Translations under genes and position numbers: made by a program
Sequence record: MZ475893.1
DNA: 64,000 nucleotides
Reading direction: 5' to 3' (one strand)
The notes under the pieces: model-generated
What the model was told of the DNA's origin: nothing
Database searches by the model: none
Seen by the model: only the letters and a program-made list of their open reading frames with translations
Shown here: in pieces, positions 11,692 to 24,104 of the stretch
How the letters are laid out: every line of letters begins with the position of its first letter
How positions within the stretch are numbered: the stretch's first letter is position 1

Positions 11692-12741
11692 GTGTATTTG
11701 ACCATGAATAACAAGTCTAACCTGACAGGCGGTCAAATCGAAAGCGTCATGGACACGATGCTTCACGACTGCCTGAGGGAGATTGTTGAGAATACGGATA
11801 TATTCGATGTGCAGCTAACGTACCTGTTGGCTCTCATCACGTCGAACAAAAAGCGTAAGCCCTACAACGCTCAAACCCGTGACCGCGCGATCAGCCTTCT
11901 GATTCGTGCGCTTTCAGTTCCTCGTAATCAGAAAATGATCTACATTCAGGAACTGAAAATGGAACGCAACTTTATCTATGTGTTCCTGGAAAATGTAATT
12001 AAGCGGTACTACGTTACTTATGTTGATCTCTATCGCGCATTCATTTGCACGCAAGATGAGGTCAAGCGTAAAGCGTATGCGAATCGCCTGAACGTGTATG
12101 TCAAAATGTTCGGTGCTGATTCCCGCTCCAAACTGTTTGTTGCGCTGTGCCGCTTAAACGATTTAATGCCACAGTTCATGGAATACTTCCATAGTGTTGT
12201 CGGTGACTTCTATCGTCTGAGCAGCAAGCAAACGAAATTTTATATTGATACCAATAAAGGCAAGCTATACGACAGCAAGGACGTGCGTCAAAACTTCCTG
12301 CGCAATATCATTATTGCTATCAATAAGTATGACTCGTCGCGAGGTGCGATAGTCAGCTACGTGAAGTGGTGGATTCTGAATGCTCAAACCTGTAGCAGCT
12401 CCGAGCATGAGTACGGTATTGCTTACACGATACCTCAGACTCAGCGTAAGAAACTCGCAACAGGTGAAGATAACACTTCAATGAATTTCTCGGTTAGTCT
12501 CGATGCTCCAACGTCTGAATCTGATGAAGGGGCGGACGCGTCCTTGCATCAAAAGGTGAGTGACCATCATCACCTTGAAGATCACGTTGACAGCGAAAGA
12601 CGTACTGAAAAACTGAGGCTGCTTATTAAGCGCGTTGACCCCTATGGAGTGGCCCGACTGACTATGGACGTCGGAGAGGAGTTCGATAAATTCGAGCTGG
12701 AAAAAATGCAGCGACATATGCAGCTTCAAGGGCTAGCCTAA
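11692..12741 (+). CDS. phage-encoded sigma70-family RNA polymerase sigma factor
   Basis: Region 2 DVRQN...AINKYDSSRGAIVSYVKWWI; region 3 IPQT..K and SVSLDAP; no clear region 4.2 HTH. Start may be ATG 11704. Confidence 0.8.
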   Translation: MYLTMNNKSNLTGGQIESVMDTMLHDCLREIVENTDIFDVQLTYLLALITSNKKRKPYNAQTRDRAISLLIRALSVPRNQKMIYIQELKMERNFIYVFLENVIKRYYVTYVDLYRAFICTQDEVKRKAYANRLNVYVKMFGADSRSKLFVALCRLNDLMPQFMEYFHSVVGDFYRLSSKQTKFYIDTNKGKLYDSKDVRQNFLRNIIIAINKYDSSRGAIVSYVKWWILNAQTCSSSEHEYGIAYTIPQTQRKKLATGEDNTSMNFSVSLDAPTSESDEGADASLHQKVSDHHHLEDHVDSERRTEKLRLLIKRVDPYGVARLTMDVGEEFDKFELEKMQRHMQLQGLA

Positions 12742-14101: not shown

Positions 14102-16603
14102 ATGGCAAAAGAGAAGAAGGCCAAAGCAAGCAAGAAGGCGAAAGCTGTTGCTTCTGATGACATTGGCGGGACCGTAGTAGAACTGTTTAGTCTGGGTAGC
14201 TACATGGACGACGTCCTCGATGCTATCGAAAAGAAGACGAAAGTTAGTTCCGCTGATGCTGCCCGACATGCTCCTCGTATCTCGACCGGTGTGCTTGCTC
14301 TCGACATGTATCTGGATGGTGGTATCGTGCCTGGCGGCTGGTACACGTTCAGCGGCGGTGAGCAATCATGTAAGTCAACCATGACCATGAGTATCATGGC
14401 CTCTCTTATTCGTCTCAAGTACAGCGGCATTAGCGTTGTGTTTGACTACGAAGGTTCTACCGATGCCGACTACGTTGCTGGTCAGCTCAAAACATTCGGC
14501 GTTAAAGTCGATCCGAAAACTATCTTCGGTGTGCGTGATGAAGAAGGCGGCTGGATCATCAAGCCTACCATTCGCTACTACGCGCCTGACAACGGTGAGC
14601 GCTTCTTCGATTATATGTCGATGCTGCGTCGTCGCCTGCCTGACAAGATCGTTGAGAAAGACGGTTCAGCTTACTACCTCTTCGAGAACACCAAAGAGAA
14701 CTCGAAGAAGCTGGCAGGCAAGTACGATAAGAAGTGGTTCAGTCGTAACAACCAGTTCAAAGTTCCTGCGCCAGATGGCCACATGCAGGCTGCTGTTATC
14801 GTTGACTCATATCCGGCAATGCTGCCTGATCAGGTCGATGACGACGACGGTTCAAAAGCAATGGCTCTGCAAGCGCGTATGTTCTCCGATGGCATCAAAC
14901 GTTTCCGTGGCGGTATGCGCCGTAAGATGATGACTATCGTGGGCGTTAACCAGTTGCGCCAGAAGCCTGCTGTAATGTTCGGCAGCCCTGAATATGAGCC
15001 GGGCGGGGACGCTCTCAAGTTCTATTGCTTCGCTGATGACACGCGCATTCGTACCGACCACGGTGTGTTGACTGCGCCTAAGATTAAAGCGTTGCTGGAC
15101 GAAGGCAAAGAAGTTTGCGTTGAATCGTTCGAAGGCTTCCAGAAGATTAACGGCGCGTGGAAAGTTGAAGACGCTCCTTATCCGATCGAAGTCAATGCTG
15201 GTGGCCATGTGTATGTCGGCAGTGCTGAGCATCGCCAGTTCACCTTCATGCATGACACAACCGCAGAAGGTATGCGTGTACTTCGTCCTGAGTGGAACAC
15301 GCTTAGCCAGCTGGCGCAGTACCCTTCTGCGGAAGGTCAGTATGCTGCGATTCGTCTTGCGTCCGTCGAAGAACTCAAGCAGAACACGCCTGATCAATTC
15401 GATACATCAAGCAAGAACATCGAGCTGGTGCTGTCTAACTGTGGTCCTGAGAAGCGTGATATTAATATCCTCTCTCATGACGGCACAACGTACACAATGC
15501 CTGCTGTGCTGATCGACGCCGTTGGTCCTTACGATCACGTTGAAGACTTCGCGCATTACATTCAGGACTTCCTGAACATCGGTATCTATGCGTATGCAGA
15601 CAACTCCGGTATCTGGATTCCTGGTCTGGTTGAAGCTGACCTGCACAATGCTGTTGCACGCGATGCAGACTCTGGTTATCAGGGCGTTGACTTCTACGCT
15701 ACCTCACGTCAGATCAGCTACCAGATGATGGCAGTTATCTCTGATGTGTTCCCAGAGCTGACCCGCTTTGTTCTGGACTTCAACGCGAATCACGCGGAAG
15801 AGCAGGAAGAGCAAGTTTATCTGGCGCCTGGCTTTGATATTGCCGAAGCTATGGATGGCATTCTGCACAAAGAGATCAGTGGCTACGATGACCAGTACGA
15901 TCTGCTGATGCAGCAACTGGCCTACGTTGAAGACTGGTTCAGTGTTGATGACCGTCTGCTGCCTGTACCGTTCACGCTGCGTGCGCTTGACAAGCAAGTT
16001 GAGTTCTGGGATGTTAACGTCGATGAGACTTCCGTCGTTATTACCAACAACTTCGTTAGTCATAACAGTGACGTTCGCGTTCGTCTGGCTTCTCGTGCTG
16101 TGCCTGAAGGCTGGCCGAAACTTAAAGACGCGCCTGGCGTTGTCGGTGAGAAGTCTGTTTCTGTTGAAGGCGGTACTGACCGCTATCGCTTCATTGCAGC
16201 CAAGACCATCAAGAACAAGATGGGTGGTATTCCTAACCAGCAGACGTGGTTACGCCTGTGGGAAGCTGACGGTAATGGTGAAGCACGCGGCTTTGACCCG
16301 GTGTTCGATACATGGCACTATGTCAAAACTCTCGGCCTCGTCAACGGTACGCGCAAGTCATTCAAACTGAAAGCGCCGTGCCCTGTAGCATCCGAAGTTA
16401 AGATGGATTGGGATGACTTCCGTACGCTGATCAACGGTAACAAAGAACAGATTGTTAGCGTGTGCAAAAAGCTGAAAGTCAAACCTGTATCTCTGCGTCT
16501 GTGGGCGTTCAAGTTCGTGCAGTCCCAGAAAGGCAAAGATATGTTGAAAGCGTCGATCAGTAAGTCCGTCAAGAACGTTAACGACGACGAAGACGACGAT
16601 TAA
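14102..16603 (+). CDS. uvsX: RecA/UvsX recombinase interrupted by an intein
   Basis: ISTG..ALD...GG, Walker A GGEQSCKST, Walker B VIVDS, QARMFS, NQLRQK..MFGSPE..PGG.ALKFY; start ATG 14102 with AGGA RBS. Confidence 0.93.
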   Translation: MAKEKKAKASKKAKAVASDDIGGTVVELFSLGSYMDDVLDAIEKKTKVSSADAARHAPRISTGVLALDMYLDGGIVPGGWYTFSGGEQSCKSTMTMSIMASLIRLKYSGISVVFDYEGSTDADYVAGQLKTFGVKVDPKTIFGVRDEEGGWIIKPTIRYYAPDNGERFFDYMSMLRRRLPDKIVEKDGSAYYLFENTKENSKKLAGKYDKKWFSRNNQFKVPAPDGHMQAAVIVDSYPAMLPDQVDDDDGSKAMALQARMFSDGIKRFRGGMRRKMMTIVGVNQLRQKPAVMFGSPEYEPGGDALKFYCFADDTRIRTDHGVLTAPKIKALLDEGKEVCVESFEGFQKINGAWKVEDAPYPIEVNAGGHVYVGSAEHRQFTFMHDTTAEGMRVLRPEWNTLSQLAQYPSAEGQYAAIRLASVEELKQNTPDQFDTSSKNIELVLSNCGPEKRDINILSHDGTTYTMPAVLIDAVGPYDHVEDFAHYIQDFLNIGIYAYADNSGIWIPGLVEADLHNAVARDADSGYQGVDFYATSRQISYQMMAVISDVFPELTRFVLDFNANHAEEQEEQVYLAPGFDIAEAMDGILHKEISGYDDQYDLLMQQLAYVEDWFSVDDRLLPVPFTLRALDKQVEFWDVNVDETSVVITNNFVSHNSDVRVRLASRAVPEGWPKLKDAPGVVGEKSVSVEGGTDRYRFIAAKTIKNKMGGIPNQQTWLRLWEADGNGEARGFDPVFDTWHYVKTLGLVNGTRKSFKLKAPCPVASEVKMDWDDFRTLINGNKEQIVSVCKKLKVKPVSLRLWAFKFVQSQKGKDMLKASISKSVKNVNDDEDDD
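15026..16066 (+). mobile_element. intein (347 aa) with degenerate LAGLIDADG-like region
   Basis: Begins CFADDTRIRT, block B SAEH, ends VITNNFVSHN followed by +1 Ser; removal restores KFY|SDVR. Confidence 0.9.
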
Positions 16604-16610
16604 TTAACTC

Positions 16611-16628
16611 GCGGTCCTTCGGGGCCGC
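16611..16628 (+). terminator. UUCG-tetraloop hairpin
   Basis: gcggtcc-ttcg-gggccgc after the recA stop; no U-tract. Confidence 0.5.
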
Positions 16629-16647
16629 CCACTATCTGGAGAAAGAG

Positions 16648-17031
16648 ATGCGTACTCTGATTCATACCGCAGACGTAACCAATCTGTCTGTGCTGGAACT
16701 GGAAGAAGGCTCTGTAGCAAAGCCTGTTACTCCAAATCTGATTTCTGATCTCAAAGAGCTGCTGTCACGCGAAGACCTGAGTCAGAACATTCGCCACGTT
16801 GTGTTCATCTCTGCTGATCAGGTCGGCGTATTCACCGAAGCTGAGATGATCAACTACTTCGACCCAATCGAGCAGGTGTCTGAAATCAACGCAGGCAATA
16901 TCGGTACTGTGCTGGCTATGCAGGTTATTCGTGTCGATGACAAGACTAATCTGATCGCAGTGGCTGGTGTCACTGATGTGGAAGAAGGCGTTACTATCAA
17001 CGAGTTCAACGCATCGCCTGTAAATCTGTAA
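16648..17031 (+). CDS. hypothetical protein
   Basis: 127 aa, GGAG RBS. Confidence 0.8.
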   Translation: MRTLIHTADVTNLSVLELEEGSVAKPVTPNLISDLKELLSREDLSQNIRHVVFISADQVGVFTEAEMINYFDPIEQVSEINAGNIGTVLAMQVIRVDDKTNLIAVAGVTDVEEGVTINEFNASPVNL

Positions 17032-17034
17032 ATA
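17018..17034 (+). promoter_or_regulatory. tandem CTGTAAAT-CTGTAAATA motif
   Basis: Two adjacent copies at a gene end. Confidence 0.55.
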
Positions 17035-17101
17035 AAACAAGTGAGGGCAATCGTGTCCTCACTTAACTCACTCTGATAGGGCATTGACCCAGGAGATAAA
17101 C

Positions 17102-17824
17102 ATGACAATCAAATTTGTCGAAGTACCGAACATTAGTATGTTCGAGGGTCTGGTGCATGGCGCCAACCGACACGCACAAAACGCCAACATCGGCGGCAAG
17201 GCTCGTTACGCATTCTACGTGGATGTGACAGAAGCTGCGGCAGAAGCTGCACTGTATTCAATGTTGCGCAAGAAGGCACACGCAGATGTTAGAGCTGTGG
17301 GCTACTCTGTTTCTCATACTGTGAGAGGTATGACTCAACCCAAAGAGATTCCTGTTTTCTTGTCGGACAATTTGTCTCACATAGCATTGGATTCTTTGAA
17401 ACAAAATTTATGTGAGTTGCTTCGTGCGCTGTGTCGTTCAGCCGCCAGCTCGGATAGCAATATCATTCTGTACTACCAAAAGGACATGGCTTTCATCAAA
17501 AGCAAAATGTTCGATTGGGTTCTTGAAGGCAAACTGAGCAGACCTTCAAAAGTAAACAGCGAACTATATGTTCGTTCCTCAAACATTGATCTTAACGTCC
17601 TTCTTAATATCGTTAGAGATCACGATTATATCGGACACTTTGCATCTAACATACCACAAGAGATTACAATAGGCTCTGATGCGAGTGCCATAGATGCGGT
17701 CAAGTTATGTGACACCGCCGACGTACTGGCTGCTCAAGGCCGCAAAGTGCATCTGTGCAATGACATTTACCGCAAAGCGTTGTCTATCTCCTTTGCAGAC
17801 GGTATTCCGCGTAATCAACTGTAA
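17102..17824 (+). CDS. hypothetical protein
   Basis: AGGAG RBS before ATG 17102; atypical AT-richer codon usage. Confidence 0.75.
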   Translation: MTIKFVEVPNISMFEGLVHGANRHAQNANIGGKARYAFYVDVTEAAAEAALYSMLRKKAHADVRAVGYSVSHTVRGMTQPKEIPVFLSDNLSHIALDSLKQNLCELLRALCRSAASSDSNIILYYQKDMAFIKSKMFDWVLEGKLSRPSKVNSELYVRSSNIDLNVLLNIVRDHDYIGHFASNIPQEITIGSDASAIDAVKLCDTADVLAAQGRKVHLCNDIYRKALSISFADGIPRNQL

Positions 17825-17868
17825 ACCAAACACATTGCTGTGTGTAGTCTTTGGCCAAACTTAGGCTC

Positions 17869-17895
17869 GGGAGTCCAGGACGGGCTCCCATTTTT
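17869..17895 (+). terminator. intrinsic terminator
   Basis: gggagtcc-aggac-gggctccc-attttt. Confidence 0.7.
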
Positions 17896-17912
17896 ATTTC
17901 GGAGACAGAACA

Positions 17913-18977
17913 GTGACTGACATTAGAAGCAAAACAGCCTACGAATATCTGCACGACACCTATCTTGAAAACAATTTCTTTGTTGGCGTTCCTCGATCTA
18001 AACTCACAGCAAAGTTTCAAGAGTATTTGAAAACAACTAACGGTAGGCTGCATCGTCACGGTCTTCCTCTTGCTGACTTTATGACGTGGGCCAACATGCG
18101 TCCTGAGATCAAAAAGGGCGAACAGCAATTTGATGCCGTCATGAGACTGCACAAACTTTCTTTTGATGCAGCTGCGGTGTATACACAATTTGTATGGTCG
18201 TTTACCAAAGGTGTGTTCAAGATCGATCAAGAAATATGGAAGCATCTTGCAGAAGGTGAGCCACCCAAGATACTACCCTCTGATACGCTCAAGAGATTGC
18301 CTAACTGGTCCCAGTGGTTAGATACATCGCTGAGAATGGTGCGCCACGATAGCGCCAGTGACACGCTGTTTGCTTTGACCACTGAAGGCTTCTGGTCAAC
18401 TTATCTGTGCTATGATCATCAAAACAGAACGCACATGTTCCTCGTAGCGCCTACCGTTATGCAAATAGGCAAAGAGAGTTTCATCGCAACCACTCTGGTT
18501 ATGTTTGATATAACAAAAGACCATGAGATGGAAGACAACATGGATTGGCAAATCACCGCCACATCAACTGACGGTCAAACTTCCGTACGCTTTACGAAAG
18601 AGCATGAAACGTACGGCAAGATACTTGACGGTTTGGTTAGTGCTTGGATTGATTCTGCTGTCAATGCGTTGTTGTTCGTCGCTTCATCCGTTGATAACGT
18701 TTATAAAGGAGGTGTAAAGGGAATCGTCCCACGCAAACAAGGTAAGACGTTCAAAGTTCTACCGATACGTGACGTGCGTGTATGGCATGTAGGTTCCGAA
18801 TTGCTTAACGAGATACGCCAGTATGAATCTGATGTAGCCTCAGAGAGTTCTCAGAATCGCCGTGCTCACATTCGTCGTGGTCATTATCATAACTACTGGT
18901 ATGGCCCACGTGATGGTGAACGTGTACTAAAGGCCAAATGGCTTCCACCGTGTGTCGTTCGAGGCACCGCAGAGTAA
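17913..18977 (+). CDS. AcrVA2/FinQ-family protein
   Basis: W..T.G(V/I)(F/Y).(I/L)D.EI, P......LP.W....D, GFW..Y, (I/V)G..L..E(I/V)R.Y.S, R.HIRRGH.H.YW.G and W.P...V all match recalled AcrVA2 blocks. Confidence 0.75.
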   Translation: MTDIRSKTAYEYLHDTYLENNFFVGVPRSKLTAKFQEYLKTTNGRLHRHGLPLADFMTWANMRPEIKKGEQQFDAVMRLHKLSFDAAAVYTQFVWSFTKGVFKIDQEIWKHLAEGEPPKILPSDTLKRLPNWSQWLDTSLRMVRHDSASDTLFALTTEGFWSTYLCYDHQNRTHMFLVAPTVMQIGKESFIATTLVMFDITKDHEMEDNMDWQITATSTDGQTSVRFTKEHETYGKILDGLVSAWIDSAVNALLFVASSVDNVYKGGVKGIVPRKQGKTFKVLPIRDVRVWHVGSELLNEIRQYESDVASESSQNRRAHIRRGHYHNYWYGPRDGERVLKAKWLPPCVVRGTAE

Positions 18978-19026
18978 TCACAATCAACCGTATCTTCCAC
19001 AAAGGCGTTTAGCCTAGGAGAATCTT

Positions 19027-19785
19027 ATGTCACGAGTACAAACGTTGTTCATCCCTGAAGTTGAACGTTTTGAAGCGTATGTTAAGTCGTTGCTGCACAT
19101 GGCACGCACGCTAGATAACAGCGGTCGTCAATATGATCGCACGAAACATGTTGTCGTCGTTGGCTCAACAACTCGCACAGTCGAAGCCTACGTCAAAACA
19201 ACAATCGGCTCTAACACAGTTCCAGATGGCGTTTTCTGCCTCGGACTGAATCAGGCGCCTGACCTTTATAAGAAGTATGACTTCGGCTCTGCTCATGTTG
19301 TACTGATGTTCGATCTGATGTATACGTCGGAGAGCGCAATCCAATCACTGGCCCACAGACTGTTTGATATTATCCTGACGCTCAAGCAGCGACCAGAAGA
19401 CAGAGAACTGAAAAACCTTCCGATACATATCGTCGGCCAGAACTGGAAGGTGTGGGATGCTATGATGGAGTCAGGTGCAGCAAACGTAGCAAACTACGAA
19501 TGCTATTCTACGGGATTGCAGTTTGCCCCCAATCAAACTTTCGAAACAGCCTCATGCATTACGTTTGATCAGCTACTCACGCAGGACCCTAACACTTACG
19601 CCAAGCACGACATTTCGATTGGCCGAGAGTTCACCGTGATTGATCATGCTACGCTGATTCAAAAACTCCATAACATCAAATGGGTGTTGCAGTCAGGTCA
19701 GACACAACACAAACTCATCCTCGACCACGCGTTTCAGCGCATTTTGTTCGAGCAATATCTCTGCTATGAGTTTCAGGGTCTTTAA
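19027..19785 (+). CDS. hypothetical protein
   Basis: 252 aa, AGGAG RBS. Confidence 0.8.
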   Translation: MSRVQTLFIPEVERFEAYVKSLLHMARTLDNSGRQYDRTKHVVVVGSTTRTVEAYVKTTIGSNTVPDGVFCLGLNQAPDLYKKYDFGSAHVVLMFDLMYTSESAIQSLAHRLFDIILTLKQRPEDRELKNLPIHIVGQNWKVWDAMMESGAANVANYECYSTGLQFAPNQTFETASCITFDQLLTQDPNTYAKHDISIGREFTVIDHATLIQKLHNIKWVLQSGQTQHKLILDHAFQRILFEQYLCYEFQGL

Positions 19786-19859: not shown

Positions 19860-20123
19860 GTGTACGAACGTAGCCTCGTGCGATTGAAGTACCACGCCAG
19901 AGCACACCTCTGGTATAATAATACAGAACACGCTTGCAGTGAGCGGAAGGCTACTAATGTGCAATGTGAACAATTCTTGGAAGCAACCAAGAACTGTCGC
20001 TCTGTGCAGGAGTCGCCTAGTGTTGTTTCTTTCTACTCAGGAGCCGAGCTTGTTGGTCAAGCAATATGGCAGCATGATGCAGACAGTGACAGCACACTTC
20101 AATTCCGGCTTCTACTTGCGTAA
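19860..20123 (+). CDS. hypothetical protein
   Basis: GTG start with GGAG RBS, 87 aa, followed by a hairpin at 20131-20160. Confidence 0.6.
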   Translation: MYERSLVRLKYHARAHLWYNNTEHACSERKATNVQCEQFLEATKNCRSVQESPSVVSFYSGAELVGQAIWQHDADSDSTLQFRLLLA

Positions 20124-22265: not shown

Positions 22266-24104
22266 ATGATTGAAGTAAACTGTTTCGCAGATTTACGCAC
22301 TACCGCTCCAGCAAAGGCTGGCGACATGGCGTTACTGAAACGTTACTATGACAAAGACAGTTCGTTTCGTGGGGGCGGCTACTTCATCGGCTTTCCGCAG
22401 ACAAAAGATCTGCCCGCAGATGATGGTGGCATCACGGCAGTAGATGCAAACAAAAGTTTCTTCTGGAAGCGTGTTGTGAATGACCCAGAAGAGATTAACC
22501 TGTTCCACTTTGGTGGTCGCTGCGACGGTAAGACAGATGACAGTGACGCGTTCCTGCGTAACTTCATGTGGACGTGCAAGTCTTCTGATGGCAACGACAC
22601 TATCGGTGTGCGCTTCCCAACAGGCACAACGTTGATCAACCCTATCGATCTTACTCACTTGGGTGAGATACCTGTGTTCGCTATCTATGGTGACACACGT
22701 TCTGATAAGGGCTGGCGTCCTCGTGTCAAGCTGATCAGTAACCAAGGCGAAGCTACTGTATTCAAGTTCAATGCACGCCGCACTATTGTTCGTGGCCTGA
22801 ACTGGAACGGTCAGTGCTATCCTGTGAAGGACGGCAAGAAGGTAGACGTGTCCACGATCGTGGGTGCTGTCATGCCTGAGCAGCGTTCGAACAATCAGAT
22901 CTTCCTTGAGAACATCTGTACGATGGGTCAGTACATTGGCATACAGTGCTTCCGTGCTGAGAGCAACGGCGGATCTGCATTGAAGTTCCAAGACACCATC
23001 GATACTTCTATCACAGAGATCTACGGCAGCAAGAGCTATGGTGCTGTGATTGAAGCCAAGTGGTCGAACACAGTGCAGGCCGGTTGGAACCACTCGACTG
23101 CTGTGCGCTTAGAGAACGGTAACTTCCAGTACGGCTACGGCCCTGCTGTGTTAGACATGCCGCGTATGACTCAGGCGTTCATGAAGAACGTCTGGATTGA
23201 GCACACGCGATTCCCAGGTAATATGAACGATGGTCAATGGGTGCTTGAAGGTAACTCGATTGAGAGTTCTGACAACCCACTCAATCTGGCTAACACTCGT
23301 TGTGTGATCAACGGCTACTACTTCCAAGGCGTTGGTACAATGAACTTGGAACGTGCGTCAAGCCCTGACAACTGGCTGAGTGGCTACGAGCGCGGCAACA
23401 TTCGTACTGAGACGTACGGTATCATCATGACCGATTCCTGCTTCCGCGCAGGATACTACACGGGCTATAAGATTACCAACAATACAGATCAGGACAAATG
23501 GTTCTATCTGGGCAGCTACTCATTCCCGAAAGTGAATCAAGTGTGGCGGATTGAACTGCTGGGTACTGCACCAAACGTTGTGCCTAACACGAAGCTGCAA
23601 CAGCCTACGCAGATGGACGGCATGGGTCGTCGTGTTATCACAATGCAACGCTGCATCTCACCGCAGAAGAAAGTGTATGCCGATATGCACATGGAAGGAA
23701 CGGACGCAATCGCCGATGTTGTGTACCAGCGCCTGTGGGAAGACTACGGCAAGGTGTGGGTTAAGCTGAAAGCCAACAGTGGCGATACTATCTTCAACCT
23801 GACCACCACTGGTCCAACTCGTTTCGAAGCAGGTGTTTGTACATTGTTCAGCGACGGTCCAATTGAATGCGTGGATCCCGTTCTGACCGAGATGACAACC
23901 AGTGTCGAAAAGAATCAGAAGGACTATGCGCGACCTCAGGCTCGTTTCAGTTTGCACAATGGCCTTGCAGGTGTAGGCGCAAACGAGCAGGGTCTCATCA
24001 CTATTCAAACCAAAGACGCTACAGCACCGAAAGATACCACTAAGCCTGCTGGCTATGTGAGTGTCAATATCAACGGTGTTGATCGTCTCTTGCCTTACTA
24101 CTAA
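22266..24104 (+). CDS. amsF: AmsF/WceF-like exopolysaccharide-modifying beta-helix protein (candidate depolymerase)
   Basis: N-terminus IEVN.FA.LRTTAP...G..A.LKRYYDKDS.FRGGG recalled from Erwinia AmsF; FG...DGKTDDS.AF beta-helix cap. Confidence 0.7.
   Translation: MIEVNCFADLRTTAPAKAGDMALLKRYYDKDSSFRGGGYFIGFPQTKDLPADDGGITAVDANKSFFWKRVVNDPEEINLFHFGGRCDGKTDDSDAFLRNFMWTCKSSDGNDTIGVRFPTGTTLINPIDLTHLGEIPVFAIYGDTRSDKGWRPRVKLISNQGEATVFKFNARRTIVRGLNWNGQCYPVKDGKKVDVSTIVGAVMPEQRSNNQIFLENICTMGQYIGIQCFRAESNGGSALKFQDTIDTSITEIYGSKSYGAVIEAKWSNTVQAGWNHSTAVRLENGNFQYGYGPAVLDMPRMTQAFMKNVWIEHTRFPGNMNDGQWVLEGNSIESSDNPLNLANTRCVINGYYFQGVGTMNLERASSPDNWLSGYERGNIRTETYGIIMTDSCFRAGYYTGYKITNNTDQDKWFYLGSYSFPKVNQVWRIELLGTAPNVVPNTKLQQPTQMDGMGRRVITMQRCISPQKKVYADMHMEGTDAIADVVYQRLWEDYGKVWVKLKANSGDTIFNLTTTGPTRFEAGVCTLFSDGPIECVDPVLTEMTTSVEKNQKDYARPQARFSLHNGLAGVGANEQGLITIQTKDATAPKDTTKPAGYVSVNINGVDRLLPYY

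Follow-up and report, generated by a model that had tools for sequence, protein, structure and literature searches.

Introduction

Conserved residues at the N-terminus of the growing Cas12a chain are recognised by AcrVA2, and the Cas12a mRNA is lost as a result, whichever promoter drives the gene and whatever its codon usage; AcrVA2 was reported as the first case in bacteria of a protein that reads a nascent polypeptide and causes the corresponding mRNA to be destroyed (Marino et al., bioRxiv 10.1101/2022.11.29.518452). In a summary from 2026 (PMC13728456), which also cites the published 2026 version of Marino et al., the C-terminal part of AcrVA2 is described as associating with ribosomes and polysomes, while the cleavage itself is attributed to a cellular enzyme. 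Marino et al. (bioRxiv 10.1101/2022.11.29.518452) report about 1,800 orthologues of AcrVA2, which reside on plasmids and megaphages and typically occur where Cas12a is absent. The same authors count the plasmid protein FinQ among the homologues, a protein reported to lower the mRNA of transfer genes of the F plasmid, and they suggest that the family has targets other than Cas12a (bioRxiv 10.1101/2022.11.29.518452). Further members have come from phages: Al-Shayeb et al. described huge-phage proteins that cluster with AcrVA2, and a Shewanella phage paper presents ORF43 of vB_SbaS_Y11 as another AcrVA2-like protein. Here we describe a member of this family that lies in a variable region of an Erwinia jumbo phage genome.

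Results

The gene, its source and its start site

The DNA analysed, a stretch of 64,000 nucleotides referred to below as the window, is 100% identical to Erwinia phage pEa_SNUABM_45 (MZ475893.1); window coordinates are those of the record minus 186,000. This phage, an isolate from orchard soil with the host Erwinia amylovora, is a lytic jumbo phage of the genus Snuvirus with a genome of 263,891 bp, and its nearest named relative, pEa_SNUABM_7, is classified in Snuvirus. The enterobacterial jumbo phage that a sequence-only reading of the same DNA had proposed as the source was thus correctly recognised. The boundaries given there for the gene under study were likewise exact: the coding sequence extends over positions 17913..18977 of the plus strand, stop codon included, as an uninterrupted ORF that begins with GTG and encodes 354 amino acids. 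In GenBank the same coding sequence is entered as pEaSNUABM45_00249, "hypothetical protein". A Shine-Dalgarno-like GGAG (17901..17904, plus strand), read directly from the sequence, precedes the GTG by 9 nt. The GTG start is supported by relatives that start with ATG: their alignment to the window protein begins at residue 1, and invariant residues appear in it from position 14.

Compared with three close relatives, the gene shows 22–33 synonymous and 1.5–5.5 non-synonymous differences, and its pN/pS of 0.02–0.06 is among the lowest in the block. Purifying selection on the gene is strong within Snuvirus, and the pN/pS values rule out that 17913–18977 is a chance ORF. No second copy of the gene was found within the 64-kb window, either by tblastn or with the family HMM on six-frame ORFs. 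The protein is matched by PHROG 6160, a group of unknown function, with an E-value of 3e-64.

Sequence, profile and fold similarity to AcrVA2

When all PDB sequences were searched with phmmer, AcrVA2 (7CI1/7CI2) was the single match to the window protein (E 3.7e-14), aligned in two ordered stretches that correspond to query residues 87–174 and 286–349. A profile of nine sequences detected AcrVA2 with an E-value of 2e-13, and a profile of 140 family members, in which the window protein forms the first row, did so with an E-value of 3.6e-50. Because the latter alignment covers residues 8–319 of the 323 in the AcrVA2 chain, the similarity is full-length and extends beyond the C-terminal motif. 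The sequence-only reading had drawn its comparison from six motif blocks lying in the same order as in AcrVA2; an ordered similarity is seen in the two phmmer stretches, and similarity outside the C-terminal motif, on which the reading had staked its claim, is present when checked with the 140-member profile. No match to the window protein was obtained with the local NCBIfam and PADLOC libraries. The local copy of Pfam returned nothing for the window protein, the family representatives or FinQ, and this copy appears to be without PF26125, which is precomputed for all eight close homologues in the protein database.

An alignment-based AlphaFold2 model of the window protein reached a pLDDT of 90.3 and a pTM of 0.89. 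Foldseek searches of the PDB with this model gave three significant matches, all of them AcrVA2 chains (7CI2/7CI1; probability 1.00, E 5e-13 to 6e-11, TM 0.50–0.61), and the next match had an E-value of 0.07. The TM values of 0.50–0.61, together with a large rmsd, suggest that the domains of the modelled protein are probably arranged differently from those of AcrVA2. The tests of sequence, profile, fold and motif, to which a pairwise FinQ match is added below, show that the window gene is a genuine full-length member of the AcrVA2/FinQ family, as the sequence-only reading had assigned it.

Domain layout and functional residues

The window protein can be divided into four parts. The N-terminal helical region, as predicted by AlphaFold2 secondary structure, comprises residues 1–92 (17913..18188, plus strand); its mean pairwise identity among 12 alleles of the clade is 29–36%, its column occupancy across the family is about 0.63, and in distant family members it is often missing or different. 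It is followed by a first conserved core at residues 93–135 (18189..18317, plus strand), which is covered residue by residue in the HMMER alignment to 7CI1, holds W95, D105, P122, P130 and W132, has an identity of 51% among the alleles and contains six columns that are at least 80% conserved family-wide. The middle domain, residues 136–263 (18318..18701, plus strand), is modelled as a beta-sheet with a long helix, carries a net charge of −10 and is the most variable part of the protein, with 28–32% identity among the alleles. A linker and a small C-terminal beta domain make up residues 264–354 (18702..18974, plus strand), with AlphaFold2 strands at 274–349; this domain has a net charge of +9 and is the most conserved part, residues 316–354 being 68% identical among the alleles and including 11 columns at least 80% conserved across the family. 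Family-wide conservation is thus concentrated in residues 93–135 and 316–354, and residues 1–92 and 136–262 are poorly conserved. By analogy with AcrVA2 we infer that the middle domain is the target-recognition surface; the C-terminal domain is the presumed ribosome-binding and effector module, the role that the 2026 summary (PMC13728456) gives to the corresponding part of AcrVA2.

The most conserved stretch of the C-terminal domain contains the motif H319-x-R321-x-x-H324 (18867..18884, plus strand), the counterpart of H286/R288/H291 of AcrVA2. The sequence-only reading had quoted this end of the protein as RRAHIRRGHYHNYWYG, and this string is found at residues 316–331 (nt 18858–18905) with the motif inside it. 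P130, H319, R321 and H324 are the only invariant columns across 140 family representatives; in the same alignment the W95 column is at least 90% conserved, and D105 is D or E in nine of nine close relatives. In the HMMER alignment, after correction for the PDB chain index, which runs one ahead of the numbering of Marino et al., W79, D89, H286, R288 and H291 of AcrVA2 align with W95, D105, H319, R321 and H324, respectively. The substitutions H286A, R288A and H291A diminish the down-regulation of the mRNA by AcrVA2, which is also weakened by W79A and D89A (Marino et al., bioRxiv 10.1101/2022.11.29.518452). All five of the AcrVA2 residues known from mutation to matter are present in the window protein.

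These residues bear on whether the protein could share the fold of AcrVA2 and act differently, by blocking its finished target protein or by binding nucleic acid, without any translation-coupled decay of mRNA. Mature Cas12a is bound by AcrVA2 too, as is a Cas12a peptide in crystals, which would suit a plain binder, and the identity of the window protein to AcrVA2 is only about 20%. However, binding alone is not inhibitory in the case of AcrVA2 (bioRxiv 10.1101/2022.11.29.518452), and the residues specific to mRNA down-regulation are invariant in this protein as in the whole family, an argument for retention of the activity. We consider a different action of this kind improbable.

A conserved locus with divergent alleles

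The AcrVA2-like gene lies in a region with the order sigma-factor-like gene, SSB, UvsX-like gene, small ORF, ORF of about 240 amino acids, AcrVA2-like gene and ORF of about 250 amino acids. The same order was found in Sasquatchvirus Y3, Yoloswagvirus, Rivsvirus SNUABM5 and many Alexandravirus phages, including Dickeya phage AD1, and the AcrVA2-like gene occupies the same locus in every fetched member of the five genera. Four fast-diverging genes, the AcrVA2-like gene among them, form a variable island (16604..19775, no strand assigned) between the UvsX-like gene and a conserved downstream region: the blastn collinearity of the window with Y3, Alexandra, SNUABM_33, SNUABM_20 and SNUABM_30 ends at about 16600–16673 and resumes at about 19743–19775. 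The other three island genes are hyp127 (16648–17031), hyp240 (17102–17824, plus strand), a 240-aa ORF just upstream of the AcrVA2-like gene, and hyp252 (19027–19785). Searches of PHROG, Pfam, PADLOC and the PDB gave no relatives for hyp127, hyp240, hyp252 and the three genes that follow, the PADLOC defence-system models matched neither the window protein nor six neighbours, and no defence- or anti-defence-related neighbour was recognised at the locus. As the neighbours have no recognised relatives, the genomic context gives no functional clue.

The island diverges much faster than its flank. Identity to the window is 76–90% for the sigma protein, 64–91% for SSB and 57–78% for the UvsX-like protein, and 24–47% for the AcrVA2-like protein; among Alexandraviruses with about 90% sigma identity the AcrVA2-like identity spans 24% to 45%. 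The 12 alleles compared, out of about 60 available, form at least three classes, and this grouping is at odds with that of the core genes. Class A consists of SNUABM_45, Y3, SNUABM_33, Yoloswag and SNUABM_5, class B of Alexandra, SNUABM_39, SNUABM_36, SNUABM_16, SNUABM_30 and AD1, and class C of SNUABM_20. Between Alexandra and SNUABM_33 the three core proteins are 86–94% identical, whereas identity in the AcrVA2-like gene is about 28–30%, and the gene body of Alexandra has no detectable DNA similarity to that of SNUABM_33 or SNUABM_20, while the non-coding element just upstream of it (described below) is 90–94% identical in the same comparisons. Such a pattern would result from an exchange of cassettes between conserved flanks or from balanced alleles of great age, and hypervariable alleles at a locus that is itself kept are, as far as the sequences speak, the signature of an arms race.

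The AcrVA2-like gene does not form a fixed two-gene module with hyp240 or hyp252, since neither of these changes in identity along with the allele class. We observed that hyp240 is even more variable than the AcrVA2-like gene, with about 30% identity between Alexandra and SNUABM_39, whose flanking proteins are 93–98% identical, and that SNUABM_20, SNUABM_30 and Yoloswag lack it. This ORF may represent another cassette that swaps independently.

The locus could also be read as that of a phage housekeeping regulator, which governs the programme of the phage itself or switches off a conserved function of the host and has no part in anti-defence. The gene is found at the same place in all fetched members of the clade, it adjoins the sigma-factor, SSB and UvsX-like genes and it is under very strong short-term purifying selection; its presence in all fetched members looks more like that of a core gene than of a typical, sporadic anti-defence gene. 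Yet a regulator with a fixed target should tolerate neither an identity of 24–47% nor swaps of alleles between phages that are 86–98% identical in the adjacent core proteins, and the parts that vary are those expected to read the target. We therefore hold a housekeeping role to be rather improbable.

FinQ and the distribution of the family

A tblastn search of PLSDB matched 582 plasmid records, mostly of conjugative E. coli and Salmonella plasmids, in which the matched gene is annotated finQ (E 3e-8 to 6e-9), and pairwise BLASTP with one FinQ gave an E-value of 4e-14. Among 1.84 billion cluster representatives the nine-sequence profile detected 2,447 proteins at E ≤ 1e-3, each a representative at 50% clustering, of which 737 remained at E ≤ 1e-10 and only nine reached E ≤ 1e-30. 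Judged by sequence similarity, the window protein belongs to a tight subfamily confined to the group of Snuvirus, Sasquatchvirus, Yoloswagvirus, Rivsvirus and Alexandravirus. Homologues in the phages Special G and Asesino and in Klebsiella phages are only 21–26% identical to this subfamily, and in the record of the Erwinia jumbo phage Special G the gene is already labelled "putative protein FinQ". Scans based on narrow peptide patterns, which understate the distribution, found a single distant relative in bacterial genomes and, in IMG/VR, mainly the same isolates together with two metagenomic genomes of about 265 kb.

The kinship with FinQ raises the possibility that the window protein is a weapon of the FinQ type, which would work by the same mechanism on a protein of a rival plasmid, prophage, satellite or co-infecting phage. 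FinQ, the other studied member of the family, lowers the mRNA of F-plasmid transfer genes, and Marino et al. frame the AcrVA2 family as serving conflict between mobile elements. Diverse rival elements would also explain why many allele classes occur on one uniform host: all of these phages were isolated on E. amylovora, which is genetically uniform, and a single host target does not easily explain three deeply divergent classes. On the other hand, no candidate rival element was identified, and the infection cycle of a lytic jumbo phage leaves only a short window in which silencing the new proteins of a rival could matter. We regard a rival-element target as fairly unlikely.

A conserved non-coding element upstream of the gene

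Directly upstream of the AcrVA2-like gene lies a conserved non-coding element (17824..17899, plus strand), supported by alignments and a consensus fold. This 75-nt element is the only stretch of the island that is conserved at the DNA level across genera, with an identity of 77–81% across genera and 90–94% within Alexandravirus. It comprises a 21-nt motif (17829–17849, plus strand), a small hairpin and, as detected in a terminator scan, a terminator-like G+C-rich hairpin (17869–17889, plus strand) followed by a T-run. The terminator-like hairpin is thus placed directly before the AcrVA2-like gene, and no promoter was identified there. In Yoloswag and SNUABM_5 a different hairpin takes the position of the element. 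The 21-nt motif has a single occurrence in the 64-kb window, which rules out that it is a recurrent phage promoter. Scans of the whole window (1–64000) for Rfam families at the gathering threshold and for tRNA genes returned no family and no tRNA gene. The element could be a terminator, a regulatory leader or a recombination anchor.

The element also touches the annotation of the gene in Alexandra. The annotated start of Alexandra_251 (L005, 8935–9987) gives a protein of 350 amino acids, and its coding sequence overlaps the next gene; the SNUABM_39 protein, which is 96% identical, has 329 amino acids, and the conserved intergenic element enters the annotated 5′ end of Alexandra_251. The start of Alexandra_251 has probably been called too far upstream.

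Other genes in the window

Several further genes of the window were characterised in passing. Downstream of the island, a small conserved ORF of 87 amino acids (19860–20123, plus strand) shares 75% identity with Alexandra_253 (E 2e-45). The record of pEa_SNUABM_7 lists this ORF (MPK74_gp251) and that of pEa_SNUABM_45 does not, so that it is probably a missed gene there. The UvsX/RecA-like recombinase (14102–16603, plus strand) has 833 amino acids compared with the 506 positions of its PHROG profile, and its Pfam RecA match is split into two stretches, so that the protein evidently carries large insertions; their length is conserved across the clade (proteins of about 830–850 amino acids). The RpoD-like sigma factor (11704–12741, plus strand) is matched by PHROG 17569 with an E-value of 3e-156. 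An EPS-depolymerase-like tail protein is encoded at 22266–24104 (plus strand; PHROG 4250, E 5e-196), and its gene was detected in Yoloswag, SNUABM_5 and SNUABM_30, whereas the portions fetched from Y3, Alexandra and most Alexandravirus loci did not show it.

Discussion

Proposed mechanism and target

In the light of these data we consider it moderately probable that the gene encodes a full-length, functional protein of the AcrVA2/FinQ family that brings about the translation-coupled destruction of the mRNA of one target, encoded by the host. In such a scheme, the basic, conserved C-terminal domain with its invariant H-x-R-x-x-H would dock on translating ribosomes, and the variable N-terminal and middle parts would read the chain of a single target protein as it emerges. 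A host RNase would then be recruited and the mRNA of the target destroyed, so that the target would never be made. This scheme is transferred from a relative with which the window protein shares about 20% of its residues, and we infer the mechanism on that basis. The sequence-only reading had likewise proposed translation-coupled mRNA destruction directed at a target other than Cas12a, a reasonable suggestion for a member of this family. The target would most likely be a host-encoded protein that hinders the phage, e.g., a defence or another restriction factor, and the allele classes of the sister phages would probably be aimed at different targets or target variants.

[quoted passage not shown] The CRISPR-Cas complement of this species is described as type I-E with a type I-F remnant, and Cas12a is not mentioned (PMC9004355). 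This agrees with the sequence-only reading, which had already doubted that Cas12a is a system of the host. The homology to AcrVA2 would by itself suggest a functional AcrVA2 orthologue, a literal anti-CRISPR protein against Cas12a; the description of the host's systems (PMC9004355) speaks against it, as do the typical occurrence of family members where Cas12a is absent and the lack of likeness in the regions outside the two conserved cores. Such a function is very improbable. "Anti-CRISPR" is accordingly not justified as a functional label for the gene, which should bear the AcrVA2/FinQ family label only.

A more specific form of the mRNA-destruction reading takes the allele classes into account. 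In this clade of jumbo phages the AcrVA2-like gene might be an exchangeable specificity cassette between conserved flanks, each of the three or more classes destroying, during translation, the mRNA of a different, non-CRISPR protein of the host or of a rival element; we put this forward tentatively, as a less probable possibility. If it were true, the nearly isogenic lytic phages of one host would constitute a natural panel of silencers addressed by protein sequence, and the recognition code of the family could be read from this panel.

Significance

The sequence-only reading had seen in the gene a potentially new system. This was overstated, given that Marino et al. report about 1,800 orthologues, megaphages included, and the finding is a correctly recognised new member of a known family and not a new system. 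What is added here, as far as our searches show, is a hypervariable cassette with three allele classes in cultured phages that grow on one host. Cas12a is the only known target in a family with 2,447 representatives at 50% clustering. Divergent alleles at one locus, which share a conserved effector end and differ in the presumed reading surface, offer a comparison that could show how specificity is coded. As a direct consequence for annotation, about 60 "hypothetical protein" records of Erwinia phages can be relabelled as AcrVA2/FinQ family, without an anti-CRISPR claim.

Comparison with known systems

AcrVA2 of the Moraxella bovoculi prophage is the closest described system. Like the window protein it is phage-borne, and the two share the same fold, the same three-part build and the same essential residues. 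They differ in that the proteins are about 20% identical, the window protein being about 30 amino acids longer, and in their surroundings: the AcrVA2 gene neighbours acrVA1 in a prophage, whereas the window gene belongs to a lytic phage of 264 kb and is not beside acrVA1. The target should differ as well, because E. amylovora has no known Cas12a.

FinQ, a fertility-inhibition protein found on IncI-type conjugative plasmids, resembles the window protein over residues 95/121–349, the C-terminal motif included, with 23% identity, and both proteins are carried by mobile elements of Enterobacterales. As annotated, however, FinQ is shorter (259 aa) and has no counterpart of the N-terminal approximately 100 residues; it is plasmid-borne and acts on transfer genes of the F plasmid, an action that is not relevant to a lytic phage. 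The AcrVA2-like genes of other phages belong to the same family and were likewise found by homology, and their hosts often have type I-E rather than type V systems.
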